DNA from: Octopus bimaculoides
Taxonomy: Eukaryota
Assembly: GCF_001194135.2 (NCBI RefSeq)
Contig: NC_068984.1
Coordinates: 32,075,327-32,139,326 of the forward strand
Length of the DNA stretch: 64,000 nucleotides
Reading direction: 5' to 3'
The translations under genes and the position numbers were made by a program. The notes under the pieces were generated by a model. The model made no database searches and was not told the DNA's origin. It saw only the letters and a program-made list of their open reading frames with translations. Below, one piece after another: positions 8,772 through 58,064 of this stretch. How positions within the stretch are numbered: position 1 is the first letter of the stretch; every line of letters begins with the position of its first letter.

Positions 8772-10823
8772 CTAAAACACATACATTGAAAAATCAACAA
8801 AACAAATTCTCCAGCAATAAATGAACATTTGGGAGACATTTTAATTTGTCTCTTGTTTTAGATTTGTTTTCTTTCATTTTCTTCCCTTTCCAATCTTGTT
8901 TATTTATTATGTGTATGATGCTCTTTAAAAAATCAGAATTTTTTTTTTTTTTTTTCATTTCAATGAACCAAAACATAATCTAACAAAACTCAAACATAGT
9001 GACGGATGGAAAGTTACCATTTATAAATAGTCACAAAGAAACATTTGCTAATTGCCATCTGAAATTCTATACACATTCAGCAAGAAATTAGATTTATCAG
9101 TTAGGGAATGGCAAATGATATTTATTCATTGATTTTGTGAGAATTTTTCACTTGAATAAGAAATTTCAAAAGCAGTTATAATTGTCAGTATGGCCATTAC
9201 TCCGAGTTATGGCATAGAATGGGACTATTTCGAAATTCTGATTCCTATTTTGTTTCAGAGAGGTACTGTTTTTCTTTGATTGTTAGAAAAGGATGAATCT
9301 CTGAAAGATATCAGGATAGAGGCTTGACTATTGTGTGTGATTATTTGTGCATAAAATTGGATGGGCACAAAGAAGATATATGCTTCTTTTGAGGGAATTT
9401 TGAACTTGGTTGCTGAATTGATATTCATAGATGCATTTTATTTTGACTGGTCAATCCTAAAGTGATAATGAAACAAGAAATGTGCAATAAACTTTGGTAT
9501 TTCTCAAAGGAATTCAGTGGAAAGTCAATCTGTACCCATCACTGACTATATTCCAGTCTTCTAAAAGCCGTCCAAAATATTAGAGATGTTTCTTTTGAAA
9601 GCATTCTACAAATGGTATAAATAACTAATTGAAACAAACTACACTGAAAAGAAGGATGGGAGAAAAGCAATTTGGGGAAAATTTATTATTATTATTATTA
9701 TCATTATTATTTTGCATCATTATAATTTTAGTTGTTACTGTTGTTCATTGAAAATATTGAAGAAAACAAATAAAAAATAGATTTTCTCTTCAGCTTTTCC
9801 TAGAATATAAAGCATGATTCATTGAGAACATAAGAACATACACTGCATCACCATAGATACTTAGATAAATGAATGTAAATCACACTGAAATATTAAGAGG
9901 CAAATATTGATGAATGAATATATATATATATATATATATATATAGATATGTGAATTTACACATATGTAACCACACAGATTTATATATGGTCTATACACAC
10001 ATGCAAACACAGACATTATCTGTTACATATACACAAAGTCATATATTATAAATCCAAATACTTAGATATATTAAATGCACCAATAGAGAATATATTATTC
10101 ATTACCCATAAATACCAATCTCTTATTTCCATTTTTAGGTATGGACACTGTGTGTGTATATAAACTTTCTGAATATATTTATTTAATATATATGTACACT
10201 ATTTTATACATAGAATTAGATGAGTACACATTTCAAAATTCTTTTCAAAAGCAAAATATAAGAAATATTTCACCTTTCAAGAAGTGTATATGCCTACATG
10301 CACACAACACATGTCTGTGATGTAATTCAGATTAAAAAATAATCATGGCAGAGCTTTTAAAATACTTTTGCATTTTTTTTCAATTTTTGAATATCTATTT
10401 GTATCAATGTGTTCACTTATATTTCATATGCAAAATCTGACAGTATTTCACATTTCAAATGGATGTTTCTGATATAATTTTAATTAAAACCTAATCATGG
10501 TAGAGTTTTCAGAAAGTTTATCCAATTTCTATCAAAATAATTAAAAAGTATAGCAAAATATTACACTTACCCATTTCCATAATGTGAACTTTCATAACAG
10601 TTATTGATGAATAAATTAAATGGTAAAAATGTACTGTTCCACTAACAAGGGTTAAAAATTAAGATCATATCTATGTTTTCAGTACTCAAAAATATTCTAT
10701 TAGTATTGTGATAGAATAGGTAACAACTCCAGTAAACTCTGTGGCACATTTGAAAACAAGATTTTTGAAATCGATGTTCTCTTCCTGCTTTACAAAAGTT
10801 GCTATCAATATTATTGAGTGTTT

Positions 10824-11028
10824 TAAGGCAGTGAGTTGGCAGAATTGTTAGCATGCTTAGTGATATTTCGTTCGTCTTTATGTTCTGAGTGTAAATTCTG
10901 TCAAGTTGACTTTGCTTTTCATCCTTTTGGGGGTTAGTAAGATAACCACCAGTTGGGCACTGGGGTCAATGCAATCAACTCACACCCTCCCTTGAAATTG
11001 CTGGCCTTGTGCCAAATTTTGAAACCAA
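10824..11028 (+). mobile_element. tRNA-head SINE (family 1, Meta-like central domain)
   Basis: aaggcagtgagttggcagaattgttagcatg..gactttgcttttcatccttttgggg. Confidence 0.8.
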
Positions 11029-11082
11029 TATTAATGACTGTTTTCTCATTCCAGGCTTGAAATAAATTTGCCTTACAACACA

Positions 11083-11325
11083 AAGTATATTTATTTCTTT
11101 ATTGCCCACAGGGGGCTAAACATAGAGGGGACAAACAAGGACAGACAAAGGGTTTCAGTCGATTACATCGACCCCAGTGCATAACTGGTACTTATTTAAT
11201 CGACCCCGAAAGGATGAAAGGCAAAGTCAAACTCGGCAGAGCTTGAACTCAGAACATAACAGCAGACGAAATACCGCTAAGCATTTCGCCCGGCATACTA
11301 ACGATTCTGCCAGCTCGCCGCCCTT
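11083..11325 (-). mobile_element. Family 1 SINE, well-preserved copy
   Basis: Reverse complement of aagggcggcgagctggcagaatcgttag..gactttgcctttcatcctttcggggtcgattaaataagtaccag; CpGs retained. Confidence 0.9.
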
Positions 11326-14300
11326 ATAATACAAAGTGTATTAGCATGCATTAAGCTGTACAACTACCAAAATGATACTGTAGCACTATATGAATAATAA
11401 CTTTAATTCACATGCTTTAATTTTTCTATATAACTTTTCGTTTTTACCCCTTCATCATCTTCATAAAAGATAGACATCCTTAATTGTCAGGCTCTTATAA
11501 ACACAAAATCATTCACATAATTGTTGGATACTCTTCCAAATTGCTTTATACAAATATCATATCTGGATAACAAGTTATTTCAACACAAGCAAATTTAAAT
11601 TTGGAACATATGTCATAAGTCATTTACTCCAACACATCTATTTTCTCCGATTGGGCATCATAATGATAATCAAACACATTATGTACTCCTACATCTATCA
11701 GTTGTTAGAAGTCTAAGACTAACTACTTACAACATCTACAGATGTGCAAGGAAAACCTCTTGCAAGAAGTATAATATAGGAAGAAAAAAAAAGAATGTGA
11801 CATATCAAACTGTATATTTAAAATTTTACAAACTTCTGAGTAGCACTTCTTCATTTGTATATATTTCACCATTACTTTAATAAAAAAACAAAGAATGGAA
11901 TGAATGTCACTACTCCCATGTCCTCATTCTTGTAGTTAGTCGAGTAAGTTAATCATTGATGGATAATATGAAAATATCCAAGAAGGAAAAAAGTCAAGCA
12001 GAAAATGTGACATTTGATGTTTGACATTTATCACACTTGTGAGATAAATTGATCATAATAAACAGTGAACAATAAAATTATGCTTAAAACTCTGTGATGA
12101 AAACAAAGATATAATCAGATCTTTAGGGAAATGCTTTGACTTAAATTGCTACTGTTTTCTTGTGTACTGGATTCTTATTTGTGTTGTTTTCTTCTTTTAA
12201 GTGTGTAAACTGTAAACAAAAAGCAAACATTATTGTTTTAATGGTTCTATTGGAGACATCAAGTGAGATTAGTATGATATTATGAGTTGGCACAAGAAAC
12301 AGTAGAGTTTGAGTAGTATATTTCTAATGGTGTGAGTGTTTGTAAATTGAAACAATAATGTTTAGATGAAGAAAAGATATGATTTTGAAACTCAAATGGA
12401 GGTGGGTGGTATTGAATAAATCCTTTTAGGAAATGAATAACCAATATAATCATAGCTTTATAAAGCAGAGTATGGGCAAACTGACAGGGAACAAGAAGTT
12501 TAGACTGTTTCCATTTTGCAACACCCAGTTAAATAAAATACATGTGAGTCAAGTATTTGTGTCAATTCTACTCTTCCTCCTTTTCTTACCTTATACTAAA
12601 ATCTTTTGATCATTGCAAGGTAATTATCTTTTAATTGAGAATGCCAGCTGGTCATAACTCAACTAAAAGAAAACTAGATGTGAGCAACCTCTTCTCATAA
12701 AGAAACCAACTAGCTTTTTGTGGAAACCATCTAAAGAAATAAAAGAAAATGTTTGCAGCCCAAAAGCACTCATGGCAGACAGGGACAGACTCAAATGCAA
12801 TGAAAATTAAAAGCTGTGGACTTGTAATTCCTTTACAAAATATTTTCCAATAAATCATAAATTCTACAATATGTTCAGTTAAAAAGTATTCTCTTTTACA
12901 ACAACTAGATACAATGGAAGAAGATAATGCACTTACTCACAAGAAACAACACGTTAATGCAGATTCCATAACAATTATATTTCCCCACTTAGTAGCAAAT
13001 ATCTTTAAAGATGTAGTATACTGCATGAATACATTGATTACAGACAACTGAGATGCTAAATTTTGAATGAGTAGGACCAGAAGCACATGCGTTATCAGCA
13101 CATCTTTTTTTTTTTTCAGGCAAAGAATACAATTTTATTCTCCAGATCAACTGCTGTTTGAAAGAGTGTGATATTGATAATTTCACTTCAAGTGGTCAAT
13201 CATTAAAAAATTACCTCAACATATTAGCAGTTAAAGGATTCCCAGAATACCTAAGAATTATATGATAATAAAACAGACATCCAAATAATTAAATTCAAGG
13301 TAAGAATTGCTTTCTTCATGCCCACATCAAAAGAAATTACCTCTAGAAAATATTTACACTACCAACTGGATAACACAACACCCTGTTATTATCACCTGCC
13401 ATTTTGTTTCATATATTGTTATAATGCAGGCATCTACTGTACAAGGTATTACATGACATTTTAGTTTGCATGTCAACTTTTTTCTCATATATGGTAAGAA
13501 AAATATAGATTGTTCCATATATCAAACACAAACCATAGGATGATTGAAGTAATCTGTAATTCAAAGGAATCATTAATGCAACCATAAACTTAATTCACAT
13601 TTCAGAAGTTATCAATTAATAAAGTCACTTTATTCACTATTGATAAGTGCTGAGAAGGTGAATACATAGAGATGTTAGCATTTCACATAATTCTAGTGCC
13701 AGTAATTAATATAACAAGGTAAGACAATTATAAAATATCAACAACTACACCTAGACAAGAAATACAGAAGAAATGACTAGATGCTAGTTATATATATGAG
13801 TTAATCAAAACATAGTAACTAACACACAAAATTTAGCCAAAAAGTGGTCATTTTTCTCTCTTTAGAACATGGTAATCATTCAAATAAATAGGCATTCAAC
13901 AATTTTTCTGCTACCTCTTTAACTCATATGTACCCCATCTTTATTTTTGTGAATTAACACCGAATACGCTTCTCACTTCTCTTGGTTTTCTGCATTTCTA
14001 CTTCTTTCAATATTAATATCATAGCTCTTATGCCTGTGCCATCCAATTTCTTTTTTACATTAAGAGAAACTCTGAATTTAAGTGCTCTGAATATCTTCTA
14101 TCCTTTAATTTCTCTCCTTCTTTTATTGGTTCCAGCCAATAAACTAAGGCCATGATAGAGTACTACAGTGAAATATTAGTTATAGTATTTTCTTTCCTTA
14201 CAATAACCTGAAGCAGTAATTGCACAATTTAGTTAAATCTCCAATGTTTCTCATGTGACTATTTTAGCAGTTGATTAGTTTCATTTCAGGAGTGCTGGTA

Positions 14301-14556: not shown

Positions 14557-17500
14557 TATGTGCACTTGGTTGCATGTATGTGTGCATGAATGTATGTGTA
14601 ACCACGTGCATGTTGCTTATAAAGAACATACAGCTGACTCAGTTAGGTATCATACAGCTAATAGCTAGGTAGATGGCTCATAATCTCATATTAGCTCTGT
14701 AATGTTACTGTTAATGAAAAGAAAAACTAATTTTTCAAATAGCTCTGTTCATCTGGTTAAAAAAAAGGTACCAATTATTTAAAAAAATTGACTGTTCCTA
14801 GCAATAACATCACTATAAATCTGATAAGTAGTTTGTTGATTTGGATTACTGAATTCAGCTTCATATGTTCCTTCAGAACTCAACATCAAATCTGAGTTCT
14901 CATTTTTGAACCACTCAGCATTTGATCCAGACACTGAATTTTGATCTACCTTTCCACTTGATCAAGATGTTCATCTTAGTCTATTCTATGTGGACACTAG
15001 ATCTCAAATATCTGTGATGTGCTGTAGCCCATTCTGTACTAAGTTCTTCACATGCAGGTAGGAGCCACCATGTGGATATATCTCTGTGATTGCCACAAGG
15101 GATAGGTACCATACAAGCTGTTTGTATATTTATTAGTATAGAAACAAAAGTGTATTAAATACCCTCCAACTGTGAAAGTGTATTGATTTTGAAATCCACT
15201 TCTGTGTAAAATTGGAAGTTTGTGTGCACACTTGTACTTCATTGAATGTATTTCACATGGTGATGACCAAATGATCAAAATAAATTTATATCAGGCAAAC
15301 TGTGCTGAAAACAGTTAGTATAACACACACACACACACACACACAGCTAAATAGTTAAAGTATTAGACTAACGATCACAATGACAGGACTGGCAATATTT
15401 GGAATGCAGTAGTTCTTTATGTTAAAAGCAAGCAAAAACAAAATAATAGCAAAAAAAACTGATTGGTTGAATGGAAGATGAAATTTATAGACCCATTGAA
15501 AACATGCAATGCAAATTAAATGGCGATAATAACTATGAAAACAATGATTATGGGGATGATGATAATGATGAAAATGACAATAAATTGGTTTAAGCATTTA
15601 GTAAAGAACAAATGGTTCTTTATGGCACTGAGAATCCCATGAGAAAAATCTTAATACCTAAACAGAATAAACATTCATCGTAAATTTTGTCTCCAAACAT
15701 TTAACATATTTTATTGACATAGCTGACAAATTGTTGCTGATTTTTATCTGGAAATTAAGGAATTCTCTGAGCTTCAAAGTGTATGATAAAGGAGTTTTAG
15801 CAATTGTTAAAGTGTCATAGATGGACTGAAGAAAGTATTGGAATTAATTGTATGCTCTGTGTGAATTTATCACAAAATTAAGTGACTCAAAGGGGAAATA
15901 AAAATCAGAGAGAATATCATTGGAATCAATTTAATTTCAAATATAAATTCACATTTAACAACAGTAAACTTCCCAAATATTAAGTGGAACTTATTGAAAT
16001 ATTTACGAAGGTACCATATGTCAGCAAGAAATGTCTATAAATATCAAAATATCAAAAAGTTCACTCGTATATTTTCATGATTGATAAAATGGCTTTAGAA
16101 GGTCATATGTGACAGCTAAAAATTTTATAATTATGGTTAAGAGTTCAGAAATAAATTTTCAGAGTTAATCTCCATGTCGTAGACGTAGACATTTTATGTT
16201 TGTAACCCTAGAACATCAACTCAACAGTTTTGTTATTGTTGTTGTAGTTACTGATGCTTTTTAATATTATTGCATTTCAGTTTATCATATCTCCTATAAA
16301 GCACACACATTCAGAGACACATATAATTACTTTCATCTGCCATAAAAAGGGTTAGATTATTAGTACTAATGAAATAATGATCATAAGTATCCAGACATAT
16401 TTGTATATGTTCAGTTCTTATGCACGCATTAAAACACCATTTTTTCAAGCCTCGACAAAGGACCATGTAGAAGCTAGAAACAGTAGCCAAATCTCTTCCA
16501 AAACACTTACTGTTGCTTAAAAAAAACATTAGATAATTTAGTTTCGATTAAACTATATCAGAAAACAGAAGACAGGATGGCCATATATGGAATACCTTTA
16601 ATCATAGATCTGCTCAGGGATGTCAGCTTATGATTATGCAACAACAAAAGCAATCTTACTAACACATTCTACACAATAGTCATATTCATGCTTTATATTT
16701 GTTTTTCTGTGTTAGCATGGGTTGAATGAATACTTATTATCATTCAACTACAGTAGTAGTTGAATAATATTCTTAAGGTCGCAATTTACTCACATGCAGC
16801 ATCTTTCAGAGCTTTTCGCTAATTCAGTTCTTAACCAAATGAAAAACTGTTCACATTTTTTAAGAAGTCTTGTCCCTAGCTACATTTTGGCATTAAACAA
16901 ATTGAGATTTGGTCCAGTAGATAAAAGTTTACATCAAAATTTCTAGTGACATTATAGGAGATTAAGTAACGCCACCAATCAAGTTTAGATCTAAATAACT
17001 TCTTTTCATTTTAAAAGCAAATTATATTTATCTTAGCTTACATGATAGAAGAATTTCATAGTTTTAATCCCATGCAAGAAAATTTTGTATCAAAAATGTT
17101 GTGAGGTGAAATATCATAAAAAAAATATAAGGCAAAAAATTGGATTTAAGTATAATTAACTTTTTTTTATTTTAAAAGCAAACTATATTTTAATTAAGCT
17201 TAAATGATAGAGCTCAATTTGAGGAATTTCATGGAATCAATCTCATGCAATGAAGTTTTAAAAGAAAAAGTCATGAGTGTTTGTTTCTCAAATTTGAGGG
17301 TTTTATACTTTTTTATGAATATAGTTCTAAGGGACTTTAATATATGTCACTGACATCATTGAGGTAAGGAAAAAAAATTATCAACGATACCACTAATTGA
17401 CACATTTGACATTATTAATTAGCATAATAGCATAGCCTGGGAAAAAACATGGATTACATGGAAAAATGTGGGCAAGAGAAATAATATTCTTAAGACTAAA

Positions 17501-17999
17501 GAGCTGGAAAAATTCAGGACAAGTTATTACATCTGGTAAAGTACAGAACAAGATAATTTTTACTTAAAATACTGCAGCTAAGAATAAAAGTTATTTTTCA
17601 TTTTTAATAGAAGTAACAAGGAATAACAAAAAAAAAAATAATAACTTGTAATAAAATTTTCAGTTTTAATAAAAGCTAGTATTTTCTAAATCTAAATATT
17701 TTATTTGAAATTTTATCTGTAGCTGCAATATTTTAAATAAACATTTTCTTGTTCTGTACTTTACTATTCATAACTTTTCTTGAACTTTTCCAAGTGTAAT
17801 AAACTTGGACTGTACTTTTCCAGATTTATAATCTTAAGAATATTATTTCTCTTGCTTGCATTTTTCCATGCAATTGAAGAATTCTATCACAGCCAGATAC
17901 CTTTCCTATTGCTAATTTTTTAAAATAATTAAAAAATTTTCAAGTAAAGTATTATTTATATACTTGTCTTTAAATGTGCAGAGCTAGAGACCAATGTTT

Positions 18000-18894: not shown

Positions 18895-19060
18895 TATACG
18901 ATGGGCTTCTTTCAGTTTTCATCTACCAAATCCACTCACATGGCTTTGGTCGGCCAGAGGCAATAGTAGAAGACATTTACCCAAAGTGCCATGCAGTGGG
19001 ACTGAACCCAGAACCATGGGGTTCGTAAGCAAGCTACTTACCACACAGCCACTCCTGCAC
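18895..19060 (-). mobile_element. Family 2 (CORE-type) SINE
   Basis: Reverse complement of ggtgcaggagtggctgtgtggtaagtagcttgct..gggttcagtcccactgcatggcactttgggtaaatgtcttctact. Confidence 0.9.
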
Positions 19061-19089
19061 CCATAATAATAATAATAATAATAATAATA

Positions 19090-19307
19090 ATGGTTTCAAA
19101 TTTTGCCACAAGGGCAGCCATTTTGGAGGATATGATAAGTTGATTACATCAACCCCAGTGTTTCACCGGTACTTTTATTTATCGACTCTGAAAGGATGAA
19201 AGGCAAAGTTGACCTAGGCGGAATTTGAACTCAGAATGTAGCGACAGGTGAAATACTGCTAAACATTTCGTTCAGCATGCTAATGATTCTGCCAGCTCAC
19301 CACCTTC

Positions 19308-19356
<49 letters not shown>

Positions 19357-20790
19357 TAATAATAATCCTTCCTGCTATAGGCAGAAGGCCTGAAATTTGA
19401 AGGAAGGGGGATATTCAACCCCAATGTGTAACTAGTACTTATTACTTATTTAATCGACCCCGGAAGGATGAAAGGCAAGGTCAACCTCGGTGGAATTTGA
19501 ACTCAGAATGCATCTACAGGCAAAATACTGCTCAGGATTTCTTCCAGCTCGATAATAATGCTAATCTTTTCTATTATAGGCACAAGGCCTGAAATTTGGG
19601 GAAACGGGACTAGTTGATTACATCGACCCTGGTGTTTTACTGGTACTTAATCTATTGACCCCGAAAGGATGAAAGGCAAAGTTGACCATGGCAGAATTTG
19701 AACCCAGAACATAAAGACAAACGAAATGCCGCTAAACATTTCACCCGGCATGCTAATGATTCTGCAAGCACCCTGCCTTAATAATGATGTTAATAATAAT
19801 GCCCTGATGCAGTACCAGGCAGTGACTCAAGTGCCTTTTGATTTTAGCTGATTGGAAGTGTTATTATGTACATTATTTTGTTTTGATATAGAAGATGGGT
19901 TACAGCAAATATTCTGCTTAATACCACAGATTTGCTTGTCAGTTGTTTGACCTTAACCAGTTGAGCATGTGGCTGATGATATGTGCATCTCTGATCATGA
20001 GCAGAAGTAGTGGGAAAGCATCATAGCCATGTGTTGAGAGGAATTCTTTGGGGTTTGAATAATTCACCTCTGGAAACAACCCTTATTCAGGGACCTTTTG
20101 AATGGGATGGGCTACTCAATCCGACAAAACAAATAATAATAATGATAATACAAAAGGTTTGCCTCCTTGGCACGGCCAAAATAATCAGGAAAGTATTAGA
20201 TAGCTGAAAAGAATGGAGAGCATAGTACTGTAGGCTGCAGGTAGCAAGCCCACTATGCATGCTAGACTCCTGGAGTTCCAACAAAACCTGTAATAAAGAG
20301 AAATACTACTACTAATAATAATAATCCTTTCTACTAAAGGCACAAAGCCTGGATTTTTGTCGGGAGGGGGACAATTGATTACATCGATCCCAGTATTCAA
20401 CTAGTACTTAATTTATCAACCCTGAAAGGATGAAAGGCAAAGTCGACCTCAGTGGAACTTGAACTCAGATCATAGCAGCAGACGAAATACCGTTAATCAT
20501 TTTGCCCTGTGTGCTAACGAATCTGCCAGCTCGTCACCTTAACAATTATCATAATAATAATAATGATTATAATAATCCTTTCTGCAATAGGCACAAGACC
20601 TGAAGTTTTGGGGAGAGGATGAGTCGATTACATCGACCCCCAGAATTTCACTGGTACTTAATTCATCGACTCCAAAAGGATGAAAGGCAAAGTCGACCCC
20701 AGCGGTATATGAACTCAGAATGTAAAGACAGACATAATACCACTAAACATTTCACCCAGCAGGCTGACGATTCTACCAGCTCACCGCATT
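19090..20790 (-). repeat. Cluster of five family 1 SINEs (19090-19305, 19367-19550, 19565-19780, 20325-20545, 20575-20790), an unclassified interspersed repeat (19795-20125) and an R4 3' end, all separated by (TAA)n
   Basis: Repeated atcgacccc(g/t)gaaaggatgaaaggcaaagt(c/t)gacc..gaatttgaactcagaa cores with taataataa between them. Confidence 0.9.
20148..20300 (+). mobile_element. R4/Dong-like LINE extreme 3' end
   Basis: IQKVCLLGTAKIIRKVLDS* is the typical RLE-clade C-terminus (QK..llGTa.IlR.vL); flanked by (TAA)n on both sides. Confidence 0.8.
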
Positions 20791-23700
20791 AATAATGATA
20801 ACAATAATAATAATATGCTGCTGTTTCCTGTGAATGGGTAACATTAACAATAAGGATAGGAATTCAACAAAATATCAACTGACTATGCTAAACCATAACC
20901 AAAGGCATAACTAAACTGTTAGATGTTTATTCAAAGAATATAATATCTTACATTCTGTTTCCATATATTTTTGTTGCTTTTGCTATTATTGCTTTTTTGG
21001 CTTCTATGTGCTCCCATATTCCTGAAACAATTTAATACTGAGAAGCAAGAAGTGATGTAATTCAGCTGTCAATCTTAAGAGCCGTCAATCTTATGAATAG
21101 CTGGTTCTCTGTTTGATATTTTAAAGACATAATAGTTTGGTTTCTTAACCTTAGACTATTGTGGATGGAAATGATTTCAGCTCACTTTACATCTCGTTGT
21201 TATTGTATTGTTATAATTGTTATTTTTATTGTTTTTGTTTCTTTTTTGTTGTTGCTATTTTATTATTATTTTTACTTTTTTTTTATATTCTTCTCTTCTA
21301 GATCCTTTTGATGGTTTTTCCATTCTTTGCAAAGAATGCAGATCTATAAAAACAATTTCTAAATTAAGAAATGAGCTAGCCCCTTATAAATATACTCTTA
21401 GGCTTATACTTCCTAACTGTTGTATAAATTCGCAATAATATCATCTTGGCAGTGATTTATAGTTTAATTTGACATTTTTCCTTGAGATCTATAACAACTG
21501 AAGTTTGATTAGTTAGAAAAGAAAAGAAAGGGAGAAAGAGAGTAGAAAACAATAAAGTCGAAGTCTTCTACTTAGAGCTCTAGAAAATAATAAATCATTT
21601 TATGGTATAGCAAATATTCTAATGGGATCAACCCATTTTCAAAGTAGAAAGACGTTTCAGCTATGAAGAAAAAAAAAAGTATTGAAAACTTCCATAGTAA
21701 AACTGCAAAATAAAAATTCTCTATAAAAGTAATCTTGCAGTTAAACTGAGAATTCAAACTCTTACCAATATCTCTCTCACACACATTTCACACAGATTCA
21801 TGCACACAGAAACACACATGCAAATGTGCATATATATATATAGAGAGAGATAGATAGATATAGACACATACATACTCACACACACACATACATACATTCA
21901 TACATACACACACATATATGCATGAATGTTTATGTATGTGCCTGTATACATACATAAATGCATAGATACATGCATATATATATATATAATATGCTATATC
22001 ACACCAGTGTGATACCACCAAACGATACAGATGTATACATACACATATGCATTTATATGCAAATGATGAGAAATAGGGGAGAAAGTTGCATTAAAAAAAG
22101 CATACATTCATGTGTGTGTGTGTGTGTGTGTGTGATATATATATATATACATACATACATACACATATATGCATACATGAATAATCTTACAACAGTGAAG
22201 TACTGCCAACAATAATATATGTGTGTACAAATATGCATGTCTAAATGAATAAAGAGAGCAAAGGAGAGAGCTGCATACATACACATGCACAAATATGTAT
22301 GTATACATAAAACTTTGTGCTTATGAGTATATGTTTATGTGTGTGTGTGTGTGTATGTATCTATTTATGTATGTATGTATGCATTAAAGATCTTACATTT
22401 ATATATATGATGGTATTCTCATGTTGTAAATAATGCACAAGTGTTTCATAGAGTATAAAACATTTGAAATATACTATTTGTATACCAAGAGAGTGAACTG
22501 ACGCAATGAAAGTATCGATATCATGGAGCGATATCTGTATGGAAATATAAATGTGGGCAAGAACATCAGAATATTTTGCTTTGGTTATTCAAATTGTGAC
22601 AAATTGCCTATGCAAGGGATTTGTTTAAAGTGAATTGCATTTTGTATATAGTCCTACAGACAATATGGGAGAGAGCGGATATGCAACAATCACGATAGAT
22701 AGTTCCCTAGATCTAATATCTGTGGTATGGTACTCCAGCTAGTATTACACACATTAACATCACTACCTTCAAAAAATTCAGTTGACCATTTTGCAAAGAT
22801 TTAATCATCAAAACACTTCAAACACTTGTTCACCATTTCTTTTCTCATCTACAGCTACTATAATAGACTTTACACTTCCGAACTAGCTATCTTTTTTGCT
22901 CTTTCTAACTGCACTTCTCTTATGCCATTATCTTCATAGTGCTTCACTTCATTGTTCTAGAGTGTGAACAAGGTTTGGTTTTGTGGTTACAGTGATGCTT
23001 AAACTATGTGTTATGGGCTGAATAGAGACAACTAAAAACTCATTTCAAATTGTAGGCCAAAGCAAGTGAAAAAAAACGGTTTATTTTAATACGTACAGAC
23101 AGACAATACACTGCTAGTTTGTTGATAGTTTCAGCAGCTTTTTTTGTTTTGCAATTTATTACTATTTTATATAAAATAACTTATATGCGATTATTACAAT
23201 TTTATATAAAATAACTTATATGCATTATGCTTATATTTGAGATGAGGCTACTTAATTGGACGATTTCTGACTTGACTTAGGTCAAAGTGACACCATCATA
23301 TCCTTATTCCTGCAATCTTCGAGATTGTCTTCAAAATAACTACTGATAGTGTAAGATTTTTTAAGAAAAATCATTGCCTGAAAGCAACTCAACATTTTAA
23401 GATGTAGCTTACATCCCTGAATCACTAGCAATTAGTATATTTTAAGACTTAAAATAGAAGACTTGAATAGAGGAAAAAGTATTTTGTTAACATCTTATGT
23501 TGTGCCAAATTTAGTTGAGGGTTTGTAGCTATTGTTAGTGCATATATCGTGCAGGGTTTGCTTGTCTATGTTTGATGGATTTTAGTTTTAGTGGTATGAT
23601 GGTATGCCCAAAATTGCAGTCAAAGAAAGCAGATATGTGGAAATGGAGCAGGTTTAGTGTGTAAGTTCAGTGTACACACAGAGGGTTGGCCCGGAGAATT

Positions 23701-27500: not shown

Positions 27501-29695
27501 AGCTTCTTCCATTGAACTACACCTTACAATTGATGTAATTTTATTCATTTAGTTGGTTGGTTATTGTCAGAGACAAGTATAAGAAACAAAATTAACGCTT
27601 ATAAATGTGTTCAAAAGTTAATGGACGTTAGTTGGGTCATAAAGCAGGTTTGTTTCGCAATAGCTCATACATGTAATTTCTATTTTCTGCGTTTTCATTG
27701 GGATATTTCAATATTTAATTTTGCACCAATCACTTCAAAATGATGCGGGAAGCTTTTTCTAAAACAATTCTAGTTCATAATTTTTAAACGTCGCCCCTTC
27801 CCTTCTCTCCACTTCACCTCTTACCTTCATTACCAATAACATTTAAAAAATAAACAATTCCCCCTTCTATAACATATATAATACAAATTTTTTGAAGAAA
27901 AAAAATAATTAGATCTATATATTTTAAACTTTGCTTCCAATCCCAACCCAATACGGCAACCACCACCAAAATGATATTCTTTTCACTGGCTTTAGTTATT
28001 TTATTTTAGTCATTCTGAAACATTTGGAATATGCATTTAAAATAAAATAAAATTCTTAACCGCCACTCACCCAACCACCTATCTTTCATCGTATCCTTCA
28101 CAATTAAAAAAAATTAAATGCTAGTTGACGTGTGAAAACAAAATTAGAATTTTGAAAGAAGTATCCATAAAACAATAATTTCAGTTATTTAAAATGTAGA
28201 GAAGAATATTTTTAAATTGAGAAGAAGTATAATGGAGTCAAACTTATTTCATCTGTTCCCTCTGGCTATCATATCAACAGTTTGTTGTAGTAGCACCCTG
28301 TCTTAAATTAAATCTTTTTTGTACATCTGTTTATTTTTGTCGTAAAATTTAATTTGATAGGAATTATGTCAATGTAAATAAGGTAAGTGTCAGTATAGTC
28401 TTGTTTTTCTTTTAATTTAGTTTTAGTGTCTCAAAGAAGGAAGATTTTACAATATAGAAAAAATATAAAAGAAAAATAACGAAAATAAAACAAAAAGAAA
28501 ACGTTTGAATTGTGGAAGGATGATGGGGGGGGGGAGTTAGGCATTTTTGCTTTGTTTTAAATGTGAATTCCAAATGTTTCGAAATGTGAAATATAATAAA
28601 GCGACAAAAACTAAGATAGTTCTATAATACGAAATATTTATTTACTGTCTCAATAATTATTAGTTTTTTTTTTTCTCTTTGTCTGTCTGTGTGAATAATA
28701 TCTTTGTAATGTAAAGCGCAAATTAGATGTGTGAATATCCAATGTATACTAGTTTACAAAATCTAGTAACTGCTGCAGTCTTAGACTGGTGATTCCAGAA
28801 TGCTGGCGTGAATACAAGGGTCACAAAATGTAAACGGGTTTGTCATGTTTTGCCACCAACTTGCATATACAAGTGCTCTCAGTCGAAAGTTCCGCATACC
28901 GGAAGACAGATGCCCAGTAACTTTACATAACTACAATGCTAGTCTCACAGAGTTGCTTCCAAATCGCTTAGAAACTATACATACTCACAGTATCACATTC
29001 ACTTGGCTATTTAGTTGGTTCACGGACTCTCAGCAAGCACTACTATATCGCCAACAGTATAAGACATATTCTACTGTGGAAAGAGGATATCATTGGAAAT
29101 CTTTAGAAAGTAACCCACGTAAAGTCGAATGAATCAATTGAAGTTGAGGTTTATTTTTTCCATTAATTTCTTTAAAAAAAATAGTAATGTCGAAAAAGAT
29201 GTAAATCGAAACGACGTTGGGTGAGGTATGCCTGTACATACAATTGGTCAAAATTATCGACTTAAGGTCCGTGTAAGTGTTACATCATTTACGCAAGACC
29301 GCTTATTGATGCGCGTACGCACATACACACACCTTGTATAGAACAGTATCTCAAATCATCGCTCTTATAAAATGGTCCACCGATCATAGGTTCTACGCCA
29401 GTGACATCGTTGTCATTAAAAAAATCGTTACAATATAGAAAGTTATAATATCACAATTCTTGAAGATAACCGAATTATATTATAGTTTGCAGAAAACCAT
29501 CGACGGATATGAAGCTACAGAAAGGAACAATAGAGCTTTATCTTCTTTCACAGTCAACAACGGACAGATTACTCGAACTATTATATTTCCACACGCTGTA
29601 ACAAGCGAATAACCAGTAGACAATGCTATGTTCATTGCTTTTCTTTGTTAACAACCTAAAGGACTTTAGTGGAAGTGGGTTATTTCAGCTTAGCG

Positions 29696-29728
29696 GGCTG
29701 CGTGTTCGAATCACGTCGGGGGTCACCA
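29696..29728 (+). other. 3' ~32 nt of mature tRNA-Trp including CCA, embedded in the LTR (not a tRNA gene)
   Basis: GGCTGCGTGTTCGAATCACGTCGGGGGTCACCA equals the metazoan tRNA-Trp(CCA) 3' end plus one extra G; D-arm and anticodon absent. Confidence 0.85.
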
Positions 29729-31244
29729 GTATAGTTATGTAGGTGTGAGCGAGCTGTCGAGCGTAAGTCCGAAAGATGTAGAGAGACAGCTTAACACGTA
29801 AAGAGGCTGTCTCCAGAGTTCGAATGTTAGAGACACTCTTGACACGTCCATTGCTCTATGCTGGCCAGCAAGAAAGAGAATGAATTGAGCGGGAACGCTT
29901 GGTTGTTTAATTCTACGCATGCGTGAGACTACGCATGCGCACGGCGTTACTACAGGGCTCCCTTGCCAGTGCGGAAACGCACGATAAATGAAATCTGTTA
30001 GAACGCCTGAGGCAGGATGGCCACTGAAAAACCACCCACAAGATGTGGTACAAACACACACAAAGAAAAATGAAAGAAATGAATGTGCACTCGTGAGAAC
30101 ATGCATGCAATGTACAAATGAAATGACAATGACAAAACAACCGTGATGACAACTGTCCAGGAAACTGGAATCACGCGATGTAAAAGTCTGAGTGTTTGCT
30201 TTCCCTGAAAGGAAAGAAAATTTATGAGTGCACAAGTGTGTGTATGAGAAAAAACACAGAACAAGTGAAAGTGTCTGTAGTATAGACTGCGAAAAGTCCC
30301 AAAACACCGAGATAGAGTACATTGATGAAGACGTCGGCGCAGGAACTGCTATAGCTGTGTTCTGTATATGTGGTGGTAATGATATTGACAGTGGTAATGA
30401 TGTGTTGAAACTTGGCGACGTCGGGGGGAATGCTTGTAGTTGGTAGTAGTAATTGTTGTCGTCACGGTGGTAATCTTGGTTGGCGCACGACGCTGGTGGC
30501 GAAAAGGCTGTTTGGTGATGAGTGTTTGAAGAGGTACGCTTTTACAGAACGATCGACAGACATCTCTGTACGACCATTAGCGAAAACCTCGAAGAAAAAT
30601 TTTCTTAACCCAAGATGAAAATACGACCGTGCGAACTCAAAAAGGAGAAATGGTGACGAATGGGAATACAGAGGACTCCTTTTATTTAAACGTGTCACAC
30701 GGTCGAAACCAAAATATATATCAAAGATGATATACAAGTAATTACGTTATACTACGAACATTAGTGAATTCGTAAATACCAGTAATGAGACGATAGAAAA
30801 AAAACAACCGTATGAAATGAATAACAAGAGTTATTGTGTGGCATAAAAGATGTATGTGTATGTGAGAGTGTGAAATGCGACATATAAAAACATAATAAAA
30901 AGCAGGCCGTAATTCCTGTCTGTTTTTCGTAAGTGGAAAAATCCACTAACAGAAGCGAGAATAAAAACCGCTCTTGTTGAGTCGTGTTGACTATGGTTGG
31001 AGATGCTGGTAATAATCGTGTTGGTCATGACGATGTTGATGGTTAGTAGTCGTAGACTCGTGTTGCTGATGTGGCGACGGCGGTGATCAGCGTTGGCTGG
31101 ACGAAGCTGTTGAAGTGGTCACTGGCTGATTGTTGCTGCTGCTGTCGTGTGGTACACGGAACAGTCTCTATGGCTGTATTTGTTCTTTAGTCGGGTTCAC
31201 CAGTTATAAGTTGGTAGTCCAGAATTCATGCTGCGTTTTTTCTT

Positions 31245-31259
31245 CGTCGGGGGTCACCA
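31245..31259 (-). promoter_or_regulatory. tRNA-Trp primer-binding site TGGTGACCCCCGACG
   Basis: Matches the tRNA-Trp PBS used by avian sarcoma-leukosis virus (TGGTGACCCCGACGTGAT) with one extra C; lies 1 nt after the LTR end. Confidence 0.75.
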
Positions 31260-31291
31260 CTTTAGTGGAAGTGGGTTATTTCAGCTTAGCG

Positions 31292-31323
31292 GACTGCGTG
31301 TTCGAATCACGTTGGGGTCACCA
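31292..31323 (+). other. Second embedded tRNA-Trp 3' fragment with CCA
   Basis: GACTGCGTGTTCGAATCACGTTGGGGTCACCA, two substitutions versus tRNA-Trp; same 31-nt flank as the 29696 copy. Confidence 0.85.
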
Positions 31324-32704
31324 CTTTAGGAGAGTGGGTTATATATCTTTAGATATACACCTAACTTCCCTACATTACATTGGAAGAGAACTGAACGCAG
31401 AAACTCCAAACTGATCAACAACAACAAATATTTATTGTTCGGTGGAAAATAAAACGGCTTCTAATTGTCCGGTTTTAGAGTAGCCTGAAATGTAGATGTA
31501 CGGTTCTTCGAGCTGGTGTCGTTATAGAGACAACTTGGTTCAACCACACTCAAATGGGAGAGCTTGCTTGGTCGCTGTCTGGCTTGGTAAGAGACAGTCT
31601 AATAGCGGGAACGCTTCGATGTTGAAACCCACGCATGCGTGGTTAAGGATTCAGCAATGGCGTCGGCCTTTTGGCGCCAATGTGACGTCACTACAGGACC
31701 ATTCGACACAGGTGCCTCTCTTTAAACAATAGAATGTTTCATTTTTTTTTACAACAGATACAGAGAACAGATTTCACCTCTGCTAAATTTCATCTGAGAG
31801 AATATTTATTGCTTAAGATTATAGCAAACTCGTATGCAGATAATGCAATCTCAAATTGCTCATACTGTGTCCAGTGGACGTACTAACAAACATTTCATTT
31901 ACATCAGGTACCCATATATGCAGCTCTCAGTTACGTCGTGCATAGAGATCTCGTTTATTTCTGTAGTTTATTGGAGTAATCATTCGATTTTTCTCTATTC
32001 TTGGTACTTATCGATTAATATTTCTTTCGATATCAACAATTTGTGGGATGGGTAATATATCAGAAAATCTTTTCCTTTTTATTTTGTGACTTTTCTGGGA
32101 TTCAACGGGAATCCTCGATTTGATATTAGGATTGTCGACAAATAAAATTGAATATTAACGGATATAAAGCTATAAAAGAAGTAACTTGGACGCTGTTTTC
32201 ACTGGAAATCTAATCTTCGGTTCAACTACATCTCACAATTTATGTCATAATTTCTGTTGCCAGAGAGAACAAAGTAAACAAAACCAATGACACATTTATT
32301 ATAAATAACTAACAGCATGTTCGTTGGATTACGTTCGGAATAAATAACATTGTTTCTGCGAAATAAGATATATATTCCTTTATAAAAAGAAAGAAAATGC
32401 GAGGAAAATCATTTTGACATTGTATGTAATTATAGGCAAAATTATATGCACACGTAGCAGTAGCAGTTCGTGTTTAGGCACTGCAGAACTGCAGCACCCC
32501 CTATTTCCACTCAATATTATCAATAACATTTAATATAATGAGTCCATTTTTCTTTTATACTTGTACATTATATAATCCTTAAGCTTATTGTCAGTAGCCA
32601 TCCTCTAGTTTATGAAAAAAAATTACAAAAATCCATGTATAGAAAAAAATATACAAAAATCCAGTTCCAGCGACGCAGTGTTTGGCTGTTGTGCGCATGC
32701 TAAC

Positions 32705-37090: not shown

Positions 37091-37509
37091 GAACGTTTTT
37101 CAAAGAAGGAACTTTGCGTAAAATGTTATGTAATCCAATGATTCATAAGGGAAAACTGCAATTTAACATCCAGCGTGTGAACCACTGAGTTTTCTCTTCA
37201 CAAAAATAGTTGAAACTAATGAAAGGTCTATTTGCTGTCTAATATAACAGCAAATATATCTTTCACATAAGATTTGATAATACTCCTCTGAAACGAATAA
37301 ATTCGAGATTCTTATCATTACAGGATATGAAAATCACCATAGTTCATCAAAAATTAAACAAAATAGGTGTTTACTTAACATTATCAGCTTCAAATATCTT
37401 GTTGACATTTACTCAAAATTCCTTCGTACTTATTTTCTCCGAGGCAATAAAATTTTTATAACTGCTTATTTTGTTTTGTAATTTTCTTAAAAGTGTAAAT
37501 ACATATTCG

Positions 37510-37905
37510 TTTCTACTCAAGGCACAAGGCCCGAAATGTTTGGAGAGGGGCCAGTCGAGTAGATCGACTCTAGTACGCAACTGGTACTTAATTTATCGAC
37601 CTCGACGGTATTTGAACTCAGAGCGTAGCGGCAGACGAAATACCGATCAGCGTTTCACCTGACGTGCTAACGTTTCTTATTTCTTTATTACCCACAAGGG
37701 GCTAAACACAGAGGGGACAAACAAGGACAGACAAAGGGATTAAGTCGATTACATCGACCCCAGTGCGTAACTAGTACTTAATTTATCGACTCCGAAAGGT
37801 AAAGTCGACCTCAGCGGAATTTGAACTTAGAACGTAACGGCAGACGAAATAAGGATAAGCATTTCGTCCGGCGTGCTAACGTTTCTGCCAGCTCACCATC
37901 TTAAT
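37510..37905 (-). mobile_element. Two tandem family 1 SINE copies
   Basis: actggtacttaatttatcgac..gaactcagagcgtagcggcagacgaaatacc repeated. Confidence 0.85.
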
Positions 37906-38249
37906 CTTGTTGAATAAATAATATTATATATAATGGCGTATCTAGTGTACCTCCTAGAGAAGCTATATAGTTTGTAGTGACTTCATTTAGGCATAGAGTA
38001 GATTCGAACTCAAATCTGCCAATTTTCATTGACTTTTTCCCACAGAAAAACGGTGGCTGGCAACGGTTACATTTAGCATATAACTTTGCCAAATCGATTG
38101 ATGTCTTTGCCACTTGACCCTTCTAACCTCTTGTATGCGGTAGAGAGTTAGAATTGAGATAACAGTCGACCCCCAACGAAATCTATTTGTTCTCTGCAAT
38201 ATACCTTTTTTTCTAGCTAGTTTTGTATAGTAATAAATGCAAGAACTCC

Positions 38250-39824: not shown

Positions 39825-40720
39825 AATAACATAAGTACTTGACTTGTACTTTATTCTATCGACCCCGGAAGAATGAAAGTCGAATTTGAGTTTGGCAGGA
39901 TCTAAACACAAAGCGTAAAGTGCCAGAATAAATAGCACAGATATTCTGATAGAAGGAAACACATTAACCCCAGTACTTAAATGAGGATTTGCTACATCAA
40001 CTGATAAATGAAAGGAAAAGTTGGTGTTGGCAGAATTTGAACGCGTACTATAAAGAGCCAAGGTAAATACTTTTTTCTGCTCTAGGCACAACGACTGAAA
40101 TTTGGGGGAGGAGGCCGGACGATTAGATCAACCGCAGTACGCAACTGGTACTTAATTTATCGACCCCGAAAGGATGAAAGGCAAAGTCGATCTCAGCGGA
40201 AGTTGAACTCAGAGCGTAAAAATGGACGAAATACTGCTAAGCATTTCGCCCGGCGTGCTAACGTTTCTTATTCCTTTATTGCTCACAAGGAGCTAAACAT
40301 AGTGGGGACAAACAAGAACAGACAAAGGGGTTAAGTCGATTACATCGACTCCAGTGTGTAACTGGTACTTAATCTATCGACTCCGAAATGATGAAAGGTA
40401 AAGTCGACCTCGGCAGAATTTGAACTCAGAACGTAACGGCAGACGAAATACCGCTAAGCATTTCGCCCGGCGTGTTAATGTTTCTTGCTTCTTTACAACC
40501 CACAAGGGGCTACACACAGAAGGGACAAACAAGGAGAGACAAAGGGGTTAAGTCGATTATATCGACCCCAGTGCGTAACTGGTACTTATTTAATCGACCC
40601 CGAAAGGATGAACGGCAAAGTTGACCTCAGCGGAAGTTGAACTCAGAACGTAGAGGCAGACGAAATACCGCTAAGCATTTTGCCTGGCGTGATAACGGTT
40701 CAGCAAACTCGCTGCCTTAG
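39825..40720 (-). repeat. Array of about four family 1 SINE units, three of them head-to-tail (40075-40720)
   Basis: atcgac(c/t)ccgaaa(g/t)gatgaa..gcagacgaaataccgctaagcattt recurs at ~210-220-bp spacing. Confidence 0.9.
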
Positions 40721-41215: not shown

Positions 41216-41329
41216 CTTTAACCAATAAATCATCTTCGAACACATTGCTTAAATACCCACTATACATTGTAACGCCTAACATGTCCATCTCTACATCAGT
41301 GATGAATATAAGAAAGCAGTAAGTTGGTG

Positions 41330-41510
41330 AATTGGCAGAATCATTAGCATACTGGGCAAAATGCTTAGCGGCATTTTGTGTGTCTTTATATTCCGAGTTC
41401 AAATTCTGCAAAGGTCAACTTTGCCTTTCATCCTTTTGTGGTCGATAAAATAAGTAATTGACTTACCCTCTCCTTTGAAATTGCTGGCCTTGTGCTAACA
41501 TTTGAAATCA
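41330..41510 (+). mobile_element. Family 1 SINE
   Basis: ggtgaattggcagaatcattagcatactgggcaaaatgcttagcggc..ctttgcctttcatccttttgtggtcgataaaataagta. Confidence 0.85.
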
Positions 41511-44745: not shown

Positions 44746-44829
44746 TAAATCATAATAATAGATCCGTTTCAAAGCCAAAAACCATTTCTCTTTTTTGTTT
44801 TTTATTCGAATGACAATATATCATTTATC

Positions 44830-45070
44830 AAGGCAACGAGCTGGCAGAAATGTTAGCACGCTGGGCAAAATACTTAGCGGTATTTCGTTTGCCACTACGT
44901 TCTGAGTTCAAATTCCACTGAGATCGACTTTGCCTTTCATCCTTTCAGGGTTGATTAAATTAGTGCCAGTTATGCCTTGCAGTCGATGTAATTGACTTAA
45001 TCCGTCCATTTGTCTGTCCTTGTTTGGCCCCTGTATGTTTAGCCCCCTGTGGACGATAAAGGAAATAAAT
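44830..45070 (+). mobile_element. Family 1 SINE, full length
   Basis: aaggcaacgagctggcagaaatgttagcacgc..gactttgcctttcatcctttcagggttg..tttagccccctgtggacgataaaggaaat. Confidence 0.9.
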
Positions 45071-45328
45071 ATATCCTTTATAAGTGAATTGTTCGGGAAA
45101 ACCAACGTTAACATGAATCTTCAACATCACTGCTAACCAACAGCAGTGTTTCTATTGGTATAAAGATTCTGACACAGATATATGATTAAATTTTTTAAAT
45201 CTCTATTAGTCAAGGAGAAATTTGGAAGTGCTTTCAGATAAAAATAAAGGAAACAATAATAGAAATAAATAATAATGGTATCAAATTTTGCCACAAGGGC
45301 AGACATTTTGGGAGAGGTGGTAAGTCGA

Positions 45329-45979: not shown

Positions 45980-46565
45980 AAAGAACAAGGTTGAAATGTG
46001 GCTAACCACTTTGCCTGGTATGCTAATGGTTCTGCCAGCTTGCTGCCTTATTAATAATCAACGTTGATATCAGCAACATCATGATGACTATTTGCTCTGC
46101 TTCCTTTGCCTTTCTGAGCAAAATGCATTCTGGTATATTGCACATCTTTATATTCTGAGTTCAAATTTTGTCAAGGTCAACTTTTCCTTTCATCCTTGTA
46201 GAGTCGGTCAAATAAAGACCAGTTGAACACTGGGGTTGATGTAATCAAATTACCCCATTCCCCTGAACTTGCTGACTTTGTGCTAAAATGTGAAACCATT
46301 ATTATTATTATTATTATAGACAGTGAACTGGCAGACTCATTAGCATGCCAAGCAAAATGATAAGTGGCATTTTATCCATCTTTATTTTGTAAGTTTAAAT
46401 TCTGCCAAAGTTGTCATTGTTCTTTCATCCCTTTAGGGTTGATAAACTAATTACTACTAAACCTTTCCCCGAAACTTTCAAGCTTTGTACCAATAATAGA
46501 AAGGATTATTAGCATTAGCGTTATTAAGGCAACAAGCTGACAGAATTATTAGCATGCCAAAATGT
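45980..46565. repeat. Degenerate family 1 SINE cluster with (TTA)n tails; further copies at 47600-47800 (-) and 47830-48030 (+)
   Basis: ctgagttcaaatt..caacttttcctttcatcc cores. Confidence 0.75.
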
Positions 46566-48093
46566 TTGTAATATTTCATTTTTGAAAATGTTGCATTAAC
46601 AGTGCTTGTATGTTAATAATTTATCAGCCACTCCTTTTTCTCTTGCTCATCTTTATTCTTCGCTTCTTGTACGTACCACCATCATCATACACTGATGGTA
46701 ATGCATTTAAATCTCCACCATCACTCTTATTACTTACAGTCTATTACATCTCCTTTTTATGGCTTCATCAAGGTCAGAAAAGGGAAGAATGAAGAGCAGT
46801 GTCCACTTTTACACAGCCTTGAACACATATTAGTAAAAGGAGAAAGAAATTGTGTTCAATGGATTCCTGCAATAAGGAGAATTGTACAAACATATTAAGT
46901 TATATGGTCTGATTTGGCCTGAAAGATATCCCAAAGCCAAAATGGGGTGTTGAAATGAATGTTCCATCTGACAGTTACCATTTCCCTAATTTCACTCATA
47001 AGGCCTATATTGATCTGAGACTATTGTAGAAGATACTTGTGAATCAAATACACAAACATGTTATTATATAGTAAAAATCTTAATCATTATGGCAATGTTT
47101 TACATAGCAAAACTTCATTATTTCATCAATATACAAGCCAATGACAATCTTGTCTTTGGATTTTTAGTCCTAAAACAACTTACAAATGGTTGTGTTTAGT
47201 TTATTTTAAAAATAACATGAAGGCTGTTGAAGGAGTCTTACTTTTTGCTGCAGTGACTTAAAAAAAAAAGCTCATGAAATGTCTAATACACTGCACCCCA
47301 TACAATAAACCATTGTATCATGTATTATATGATATGATCTCAGCCAGTTATGCATATATTGTGTATGCTTTGGTGCTCAATGATTTAATGCTTCTAAAAC
47401 CTGTTGAGGATTTTAAGGACCAGTACTTTGCTTTAGTTTATAGATAAATATTGCAAATAGGATGATGGTTTAATGCAGGATATTTTCCCAGATGATCATT
47501 TACCAATTTCAGTTATTCAATGAAATGAGACAACAATGAATCAAAATGTTCTTTTATCAAAGCTTAGGTAATATAATGTCAGAACCAGCTTAGAATTATT
47601 ATCATTATTGTTGGTTCCAAATTTTGCACAAAGCCAGCAATTTCAAGGGAGGTGAGTAAATCAACCCCACTGCTCAGCTGGTACTTATTTTATCAACCCA
47701 GAAAGGATGAAAGGCAAAGATGATCTTGGTGGAATTTGAACTCAGAATGTAAAGACAAATGGAATGACACTAAGCATTTTGCCAGCTTGCTACCTTTATT
47801 AGTATTACTATCATGAAGATTGATATTCACCTTGCTGGCAAAACTGTTAGCACGCAGGGTAAAAATGCTTGGCTGCATTTTTCCTGACTGAGTTCAAACT
47901 CCAACAAGGTTGACTTTGCCTCTGATTTTTCAGAGTTGATGAAATATGTACCAGTTGAGCATTGGGGTGATGTATTTGACAGACTCCATCTCTATAAAAT
48001 TTCAGCTCTTGTGCCTGTTGTAGAAAGGATAATTACTAAGTTTGGCAGATTGTCAGGAAACAGCCTGGGATTTTGAAAACCAGTATATTGTAG

Positions 48094-57862: not shown

Positions 57863-58016
57863 AACTAGCAAGTTTTAGGGAACAATAAATATTCCATACC
57901 AGGTGAGACAACTCCTCTTGAGATGATGATGAAAGATTTCAATATTTCATCATTATTGTGGCTATGTGTGTGTGTGGAGTTTTCAGGACATTTATAAGGA
58001 AAAAGAAATAGATATA

Positions 58017-58064
58017 GTCTTTTAGCTGTTTCTGAGATGTTATGGATATCCCTTTATCAGAGAC
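58017..58064 (-). ncRNA. Hammerhead motif, degenerate (CTGATAA core; stem III mutated)
   Basis: GTCT-CTGATAA-AGGGATAT ccataac ATCTCA-GAAACAGCTAAA-AGAC. Confidence 0.5.

Follow-up and report, generated by a model that had tools for sequence, protein, structure and literature searches.

Cassandra is a small non-autonomous long terminal repeat (LTR) element which carries an RNA sequence transcribed by RNA polymerase III (Pol III), a whole 5S-like unit with its internal promoter, inside both of its LTRs. In 1993 Ohshima, Koishi, Matsuo and Okada reportedly put forward a strong-stop-DNA model for the origin of tRNA-derived short interspersed elements (SINEs), and Lauermann and Boeke are said to have described in 1997, for Ty elements, read-through into the primer tRNA when the stop at 1-methyladenosine 58 (m1A58) fails. 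Synthesis of plus-strand strong-stop DNA covers the first 18 nt of the primer tRNA before m1A58 arrests it; if this stop is missing it runs on, and the complementary DNA (cDNA) is no longer complementary after strand transfer (PMC8599865). Here we describe a locus in a 64,000-nt stretch of Octopus bimaculoides DNA (contig NC_068984.1; the whole stretch is called the window, and positions are given within it) in which an insertion resembling an LTR retrotransposon, 29665-31695 on the minus strand, ends in two LTR-like repeats that both contain a copy of the 3' end of tRNA-Trp with its CCA, the same tRNA which would have primed the element.

The locus shares features with each of these systems and departs from each of them. 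The strong-stop model of SINE origin has the same layout as the plus strand of the window, namely the 3' part of a tRNA, CCA and the complement of the unique 5' (U5) region, but the window has no full tRNA head and no SINE-like copy number, and its copy sits inside an LTR element. Like Cassandra, the window element is small and non-autonomous and has the sequence of a Pol III-transcribed RNA inside both LTRs; in contrast to Cassandra's whole 5S-like unit and promoter, only the 3' 30-45 nt of a tRNA are present, they include the post-transcriptional CCA, are antisense to the element and derive from its own primer rather than from a captured gene. The analogy with Cassandra drawn in a preliminary description of this locus holds for the position in the LTR and fails on the carriage of a whole Pol III gene. 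We know of no described LTR family with a copy of its primer tRNA inside the LTR, although our literature searches were noisy and one could exist. Laboratory read-through of m1A58 (PMC8599865) resembles the step that we propose here, as the cDNA runs into the tRNA past the primer-binding site (PBS) of 18 nt, yet its products are mostly dead ends, whereas the window's copy has become fixed in a genome, within an LTR and ahead of a second PBS. If the reading that we develop below is true, the locus is a natural, genome-fixed record of a reverse transcriptase (RT) passing the stop in its primer tRNA, an event otherwise documented mostly in laboratory systems, and from the end points of such copies one could learn at which tRNA modifications reverse transcriptases are stopped in different animals. 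The arrangement recalls that proposed in 1993 for the birth of tRNA-derived SINEs, the basis here being one decayed locus.

A tRNA-Trp copy in two terminal repeats

Comparison of the whole window with itself yielded a pair of direct repeats, 29663-29734 and 31259-31329, which share 93% identity over 72 nt (BLAST E about 1e-22 to 1e-24) and have a 59-nt core that is 97% identical. Inside them lie the two copies of a block, 29665-29728 (64 nt) and 31261-31323 (63 nt), which differ by two substitutions and one 1-nt indel. The near-identical block of ~64 nt reported earlier at both LTR ends is borne out, with letters and coordinates correct, and no third copy was found in the window despite the many other repeat families there. 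In each copy the 3' 30-31 nt are tRNA-Trp with CCA and the first 19 nt repeat the terminus of U5. The left block consists, on the minus strand, of the U5-terminus repeat (29665-29683, 19 nt, identical to 31261-31279), a possible degenerate continuation of the tRNA from the variable loop to the anticodon loop (29684-29697) and the certain tRNA-Trp part (29698-29728), which comprises the T arm, the 3' strand of the acceptor and CCA, with one extra G on the plus strand; in the right block, also on the minus strand, the same parts occupy 31261-31279, 31280-31293 and 31294-31323. The original U5 terminus (31324-31342, minus strand; U5a) immediately precedes the long tRNA copy in element orientation, and the U5 repeat in the block is identical to it at ~17 of 20 positions (p<0.0005). 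The block is far better kept than the remaining repeat sequence, with 3 differences in 64 nt against about 30% elsewhere. Its folding was no better than that of shuffles on either strand. A 94-aa open reading frame (ORF) across the block served as a proxy query and had no match in the protein collection, an exact look-up of the 195-aa ORF was likewise negative, and the ORFs of the window are absent from that collection. None of the IMG/VR queries, namely the block junction, the tRNA part together with CCA and a patch shared by the two repeats on the unique 3' (U3) side, gave a match, a single 16-mer match inside a 145-kb viral contig being taken as chance.

To identify the parent tRNA, metagenome contigs were scanned with an 18-mer common to both block copies, and genes were called by ARAGORN. 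Among the genes called, 51 of eukaryote type for tRNA-Trp(CCA) had their 3' flank intact; they are identical to the block between the variable loop and the discriminator base, and in none of the 51 is that base followed by CCA. Eukaryotic tRNA genes lack the CCA. Because CCA is present in the block and is encoded in 0 of the 51 genes, the comparison shows, at the level of sequence, that the 3' 30-31 nt (29698-29728 and 31294-31323) were templated by a mature, CCA-tailed tRNA-Trp and not by a gene. The preliminary description had named a tRNA-Trp 3' end with CCA extending well beyond a normal 18-nt PBS, and both points are upheld, the first by these 51 genes, taken from metagenome contigs and not from the source species, and the second by the 30-31 certain nucleotides. 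A human tRNA-Trp transcription template (PMC6379413) aligns with the block from the anticodon loop through CCA. Beyond the certain part, an ungapped comparison gives agreement with the tRNA at 11 of 18 further positions, and by anchored alignments tested against shuffles the similarity may continue for ~14-16 nt, up to the anticodon loop (left copy, p about 0.005; right copy, p about 0.03); the tRNA copy may thus reach that loop, with a total length of about 45 nt. Its last 24 nt do not suffice to name the tRNA, because alphaproteobacterial tRNA-Arg(CCU) genes encode an identical stretch with CCA. A scan of GTDB genomes returned mostly alphaproteobacterial tRNA-Arg(CCU) genes with this identical end; such bacterial, mostly alphaproteobacterial, loci include L126, L127, L128, L130, L131 and L132, and ARAGORN, run on L126 and L127, called tRNA-Arg(CCU). 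The window, however, follows eukaryotic tRNA-Trp for six further bases upstream, where the bacterial genes diverge.

ARAGORN found no tRNA gene in the window, and Rfam, searched at the gathering threshold and at E values up to 10, reported no tRNA or other RNA family at the block. The block is ruled out as a tRNA gene or pseudogene, as neither program recovers a cloverleaf and CCA is present, unlike in the true genes. A single degenerate tRNA covering all 64 nt is likewise ruled out, since the first 19 nt match LTR termini, both in the window and in an element from a metagenome contig (L090, see below), and not a D arm.

Both blocks stand at the end of an LTR-like repeat. The 3' repeat (29665-29954, minus strand, 290 bp) starts with TGTAGTA and ends with CACTAAA in element orientation and lacks AATAAA, whilst the 5' repeat (31261-31695, minus strand, 435 bp) has AATAAA at 31431-31436 (minus strand), a TATA-like motif, CGCATGCG motifs and, at 31683-31690, TGACGTCA, which resembles a cyclic AMP response element (CRE), as expected of a promoter-bearing LTR. 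The repeats are in direct orientation, both begin TGTAGT(A/G)ACG and both finish with the block. On the minus strand the outer termini, TGTAGTG at 31695 and CACTAAA at 29665, form an inverted repeat at 6 of 7 positions, and direct reading confirms the termini TGTAGT..CACTAAA given earlier. At the outer terminus the two repeats match at 12 of 13 positions; outside the block the alignable part amounts to only ~100 nt on the U3 side, with ~68% identity and a local score of 33 (shuffles: mean 11.5, maximum 18), and within it a promoter-like patch of 38 nt (29888-29925 and 31604-31641) is 84% identical. The left block end coincides exactly with the terminus of its repeat and is followed by GGAC, which was correctly said to occur on both flanks: read directly, it stands at 29661-29664 and at 31696-31699, a putative 4-bp target-site duplication, for which a chance match at fixed boundaries has a probability of about 1/256.

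The CGCATGCG palindromes (29916-29939 and 31632-31639), of which the left repeat has two and the right repeat one, adjoin the conserved U3 patch, and the TGACGTCA motif is perfect; on the U3 side both motifs may act as promoter elements. The left flank (29638-29664) is itself an imperfect palindrome, centred on GTTAAC and ending in CTAAAG, the reverse complement of the first plus-strand bases of the block, which may reflect chance or a target-site preference.

As had been proposed, a PBS for tRNA-Trp follows 1 nt (31260) downstream of the 5' repeat, at 31245-31259 on the minus strand; it is 15 nt long, includes the complement of CCA and has one extra C. A pattern scan revealed a third, degenerate PBS-like motif (31191-31202, minus strand) that agrees with the tRNA 3' end at 11 of 12 nt. 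The order on the right side, in element orientation, is: U5 end, G, long tRNA copy, U5-end repeat, G, 15-nt PBS, 37 nt, third PBS-like motif, leader; the three PBS-like motifs are spaced by 64 and 53 nt. The first of these units, the long copy, retains 30-31 nt nearly perfectly, and the second is unrecognisable after 15 nt. Past the short PBS, tRNA likeness is significant in neither unit 2 (p=0.054) nor unit 3 (p=0.5). The leaders after the 15-nt and the third PBS resemble one another weakly (p about 0.035), and the stretch adjoining the left block has significant similarity neither to the U5a end nor to the stretch adjoining the third PBS. The U5-end repeat in the block, the third PBS-like motif and the possible tRNA homology up to the anticodon loop had been overlooked in the preliminary description. 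Before the 3' LTR that description placed a purine tract, of which a short run, AAGGGAG in element orientation (29958-29964, minus strand), is present 3 nt from the repeat; it is weak as a polypurine tract.

The internal region (29955-31244, minus strand) comprises 1290 bp and is non-coding. It contains two diverged direct repeats (30344-30520 and 30966-31138) of ~175 nt and ~62% identity, ~620 nt apart and G/T-rich on the plus strand, whose score of 32 exceeds both the mean (16) and the maximum (26) of shuffles. No Pfam family reached threshold on ten ORFs of the element, and tblastn searches of the window with gag/pol and ORF1 proteins from related elements (see below) gave no match. Being non-coding, the element would have depended on the proteins of other elements. 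It has a tRNA PBS just internal to the 5' repeat and no gag/pol capacity, as have non-autonomous LTR elements of the terminal-repeat retrotransposon in miniature (TRIM) or large retrotransposon derivative (LARD) type. With moderate confidence, which extends to the origin of the block proposed below, we read 29665-31695 as a decayed, non-coding, LTR-retrotransposon-like insertion primed by tRNA-Trp.

Long tRNA-Trp primer-binding sites in other elements

The comparison loci come from metagenome contigs and prokaryotic genome bins, and the search patterns required the T arm, so that long matches alone could be found, an ascertainment bias under which the following five loci give no frequency. Five non-tRNA loci on unrelated public contigs carry the 3' end of tRNA-Trp with CCA followed by an LTR-like terminus, and their PBSs match tRNA-Trp plus CCA over 32-39 uninterrupted nucleotides: 32 nt in L081 (4693-4724, the copy ending at tRNA position 45), 33 nt in L133 (203-235, ending at position 44), 36 nt in L111 (1475-1510, ending at position 41), 37 nt in L090 (227-263, ending at position 40) and 39 nt in L129 (contig CBDDTI010000523.1, 7102-7140, ending at position 38). 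All five share with the window element the primer tRNA and a complementarity to it well beyond 18 nt. They differ in its placement, as their long match is the PBS itself beside the 5' LTR, and in none is it shown inside the LTR, where the window has it. For example, L081 encodes a DUF7041-type gag-like ORF together with reverse transcriptase and integrase ORFs, its LTR pair is 90-92% identical, and its long match is at the ordinary place of a PBS; the contig ends before the end of the 3' LTR.

Two of the five loci resemble the window outside the PBS itself. The U5 end of L090 is closely like that of the window (p<0.0005) and abuts the 37-nt PBS, and the leader just after the PBS of L111 resembles the middle part of the block (p=0.003). 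L111 has relatives, L121, L122 and L123, which were found via ORF1 and form with it a Ty3/gypsy-like family primed by tRNA-Trp, with ORF1, DUF7041, RT, RNase H and integrase in this order. The conserved ORF1 (~200-240 aa) lies upstream of the DUF7041 gag-like gene (L111, 745-1401 on the minus strand; L121, 354-1076; L122, 575-1294; L123, 1253-1867), belongs to no Pfam family and matches eleven database proteins, down to 48% identity. None of the Ty3/gypsy-like proteins of this lineage is detectable in the window, and kinship is hinted at by the likeness of U5 end and leader only. Of the PBSs in the three relatives, two are ordinary (15 and 18 nt) and one is a degenerate 9-nt match; one of the three has an LTR pair that is 98% identical.

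Since the relatives of L111 carry short PBSs, long tRNA-Trp PBSs evidently arise sporadically in lineages which normally have short ones. The presence of 32-39-nt sites in five other LTR elements, together with the short sites in the relatives of L111, suggests that read-through of the primer past its normal stop becomes fixed in nature, and does so recurrently.

Both L129 and L133 are filed under bacterial bins yet are of eukaryote type, with an LTR terminus adjoining a tRNA-Trp PBS with CCA. A further locus from a bacterial bin, L125, has the same 24-nt 3' end with CCA, without a Trp-type T stem. The eukaryote-type contigs in bacterial bins (L129, L133 and L125) are probably host or eukaryotic contamination.

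Origin of the block and competing explanations

The block is, in our judgement, probably a scar of replication that could at most give the element an extra primer site upstream. While making plus-strand strong-stop DNA, the reverse transcriptase would have passed m1A58 and copied the primer as far as the variable or anticodon loop, and the last 20 nt of U5 with the first 15-18 nt of the primer would then have been copied again, either through a switch back on the template or through tandem duplication of a short stretch. Priming at the downstream PBS in a later cycle would have turned the upstream tRNA copy into part of U5, hence its presence in both LTRs. The single-event version of this history is somewhat more likely than the version with a duplication, and both need a tRNA-templated step. 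The preliminary description had likewise proposed read-through followed by a switch back into U5; the mature-tRNA piece and the layout of the U5 repeat are as it predicts, but a single RT event is not separated by them from a tandem duplication of DNA. Apart from its rearranged U5/PBS junction, the element works as tRNA-primed LTR elements ordinarily do.

Several observations weigh against this reading. As a pair the repeats are poor, 290 against 435 bp, with centres that cannot be aligned; of the LTR pair first proposed, the direct orientation and the 93-97% identity of the block stand, whilst the lengths, the ~68% identity over ~100 nt, the unalignable centres and the missing AATAAA on the left speak against it. 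The divergence is very uneven, 3 positions in the block against ~68% identity elsewhere, which is unexpected for the LTRs of one insertion. The termini are not TG..CA, the only purine tract is AAGGGAG, and the 4-bp GGAC match at the flanks could be chance. The similarity of block and tRNA is only marginal past tRNA position about 47. The additional C that the tRNA lacks (a G on the plus strand) is common to the left block and the 15-nt PBS and absent from the right block, a distribution unlike that of a simple history, for which slippage in a homopolymer is the simplest guess. Finally, the evidence comes from one locus. The uneven divergence could result from gene conversion, from patchy replacement by other copies or from adjacent related subfamilies.

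The first alternative dispenses with a return of the reverse transcriptase into U5. The lineage would already have had a long tRNA-Trp PBS, as have L090, L111 and L129, and a tandem duplication of the unit of U5 end plus PBS at the DNA level, by slippage or unequal exchange, would have built the array. The three PBS-like motifs with spacings of 64 and 53 nt fit such a history, as does the presence in L090 of the same U5-end motif beside a 37-nt PBS; that the region is prone to duplication is shown by its three PBS-like units and the old tandem repeats of the interior. Unit 2 moreover carries CGCAGC and TCTGGA in tRNA order and at near-spacing, at marginal significance (p=0.054). Equal units should decay equally, however, and since unit 1 keeps 30-31 nt whereas unit 2 is lost after 15 nt, a simple duplication of equals is disfavoured; a tRNA-templated origin of the long piece would still be required. 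We regard this as a serious but tentative alternative.

The second alternative, to which we likewise give a real but minority chance, divides the element into two insertions whose LTRs come from two related subfamilies, the left repeat being a solo or 3' LTR and the right one a 5' LTR together with PBS and leader. On this view the family would have conserved the block as a U5 module, and the GGAC match would be fortuitous. Conservation is indeed modular (outer terminus, 84% patch and U5 block, the rest being unalignable), a pattern like that of subfamilies, and the left repeat taken as a solo LTR has the flanks GCCC and GTCC, which match at 3 of 4 positions. Opposed to this are GGAC at both outer flanks (about 1/256 by chance), the direct orientation of the repeats with a PBS and a purine tract where expected, and the want of any other copy in the window. 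In every reading, bar one with a precise truncation, which is unlikely, the left block is at the natural end of an LTR-like repeat; since it sits there, the conclusion that an LTR carries a piece of tRNA stands.

Against a replication scar may further be set the proposals that the block is, or was, of use. It seems improbable that the tRNA-Trp segment in the LTR is a conserved, selected module of a family, acting as an alternative primer site or as a Pol III B-box for SINE-like transcripts, the family then being a living intermediate on the strong-stop route from LTR element to tRNA-derived SINE. A working module in the narrower sense appears a shade less probable again: here the B-box on the plus strand would drive a SINE-like Pol III RNA, and the PBS-like sites in LTR transcripts from the minus strand would bind or soak up 3' fragments of tRNA-Trp. 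The conservation of the block, 3 differences in 64 nt against about 30% elsewhere, speaks for it, as does the B-box, GTTCGAATC, which is intact in both copies. On the plus strand, however, the block has the tRNA's B-box without the A-box region of that tRNA, neither ARAGORN nor Rfam detects a tRNA-like gene, the block folds no better than shuffles, and its conservation can equally be explained by youth or gene conversion. The internal B-box noted in the preliminary description is thus present, whereas a Pol III role for it is unsupported by these results; its idea that LTR transcripts act as decoys or targets for tRNA-derived fragments found no support. On the sense strand of the element, the block is antisense to the tRNA and could bind the primer or its 3' fragments, or might be a spare primer site. 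No present function of the block is indicated by its sequence, the better conservation being the sole hint, for which there are other explanations.

Least likely is that the block landed twice by chance, as a tRNA-derived SINE's tail or as a tRNA-Trp retro-pseudogene. Its tRNA origin with CCA and the abundance of short interspersed repeats in the window would fit, but both copies share their 5' limit and the adjoining 19 nt, an LTR terminus found also in L090, a separate PBS adjoins one copy, no further copies occur although other repeats are present in the window by the dozen, and there is neither a tRNA head with A and B boxes nor a tail. The block was rejected as a tRNA-derived SINE on the same grounds, as it has no 5' half of a tRNA and no tail, and exists in only two copies with identical limits inside LTR-like repeats.

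Other repeats in the window

An abundant interspersed and partly tandem family, unrelated to the element, occurs on both strands in units of roughly 200-250 nt with 67-87% identity (10800-11330, 19060-20815, 37500-37930, 40066-40720, 41320-41460, 44820-45075, 46110-46460 and 47600-48040). The window also contains an inverted repeat pair of 300 nt and 90% identity (57971-58268 and 58603-58901) and long imperfect palindromes at 51222-51538 and 17453-17874. The inverted pair and the two palindromes may be foldback elements or elements like miniature inverted-repeat transposable elements (MITEs).

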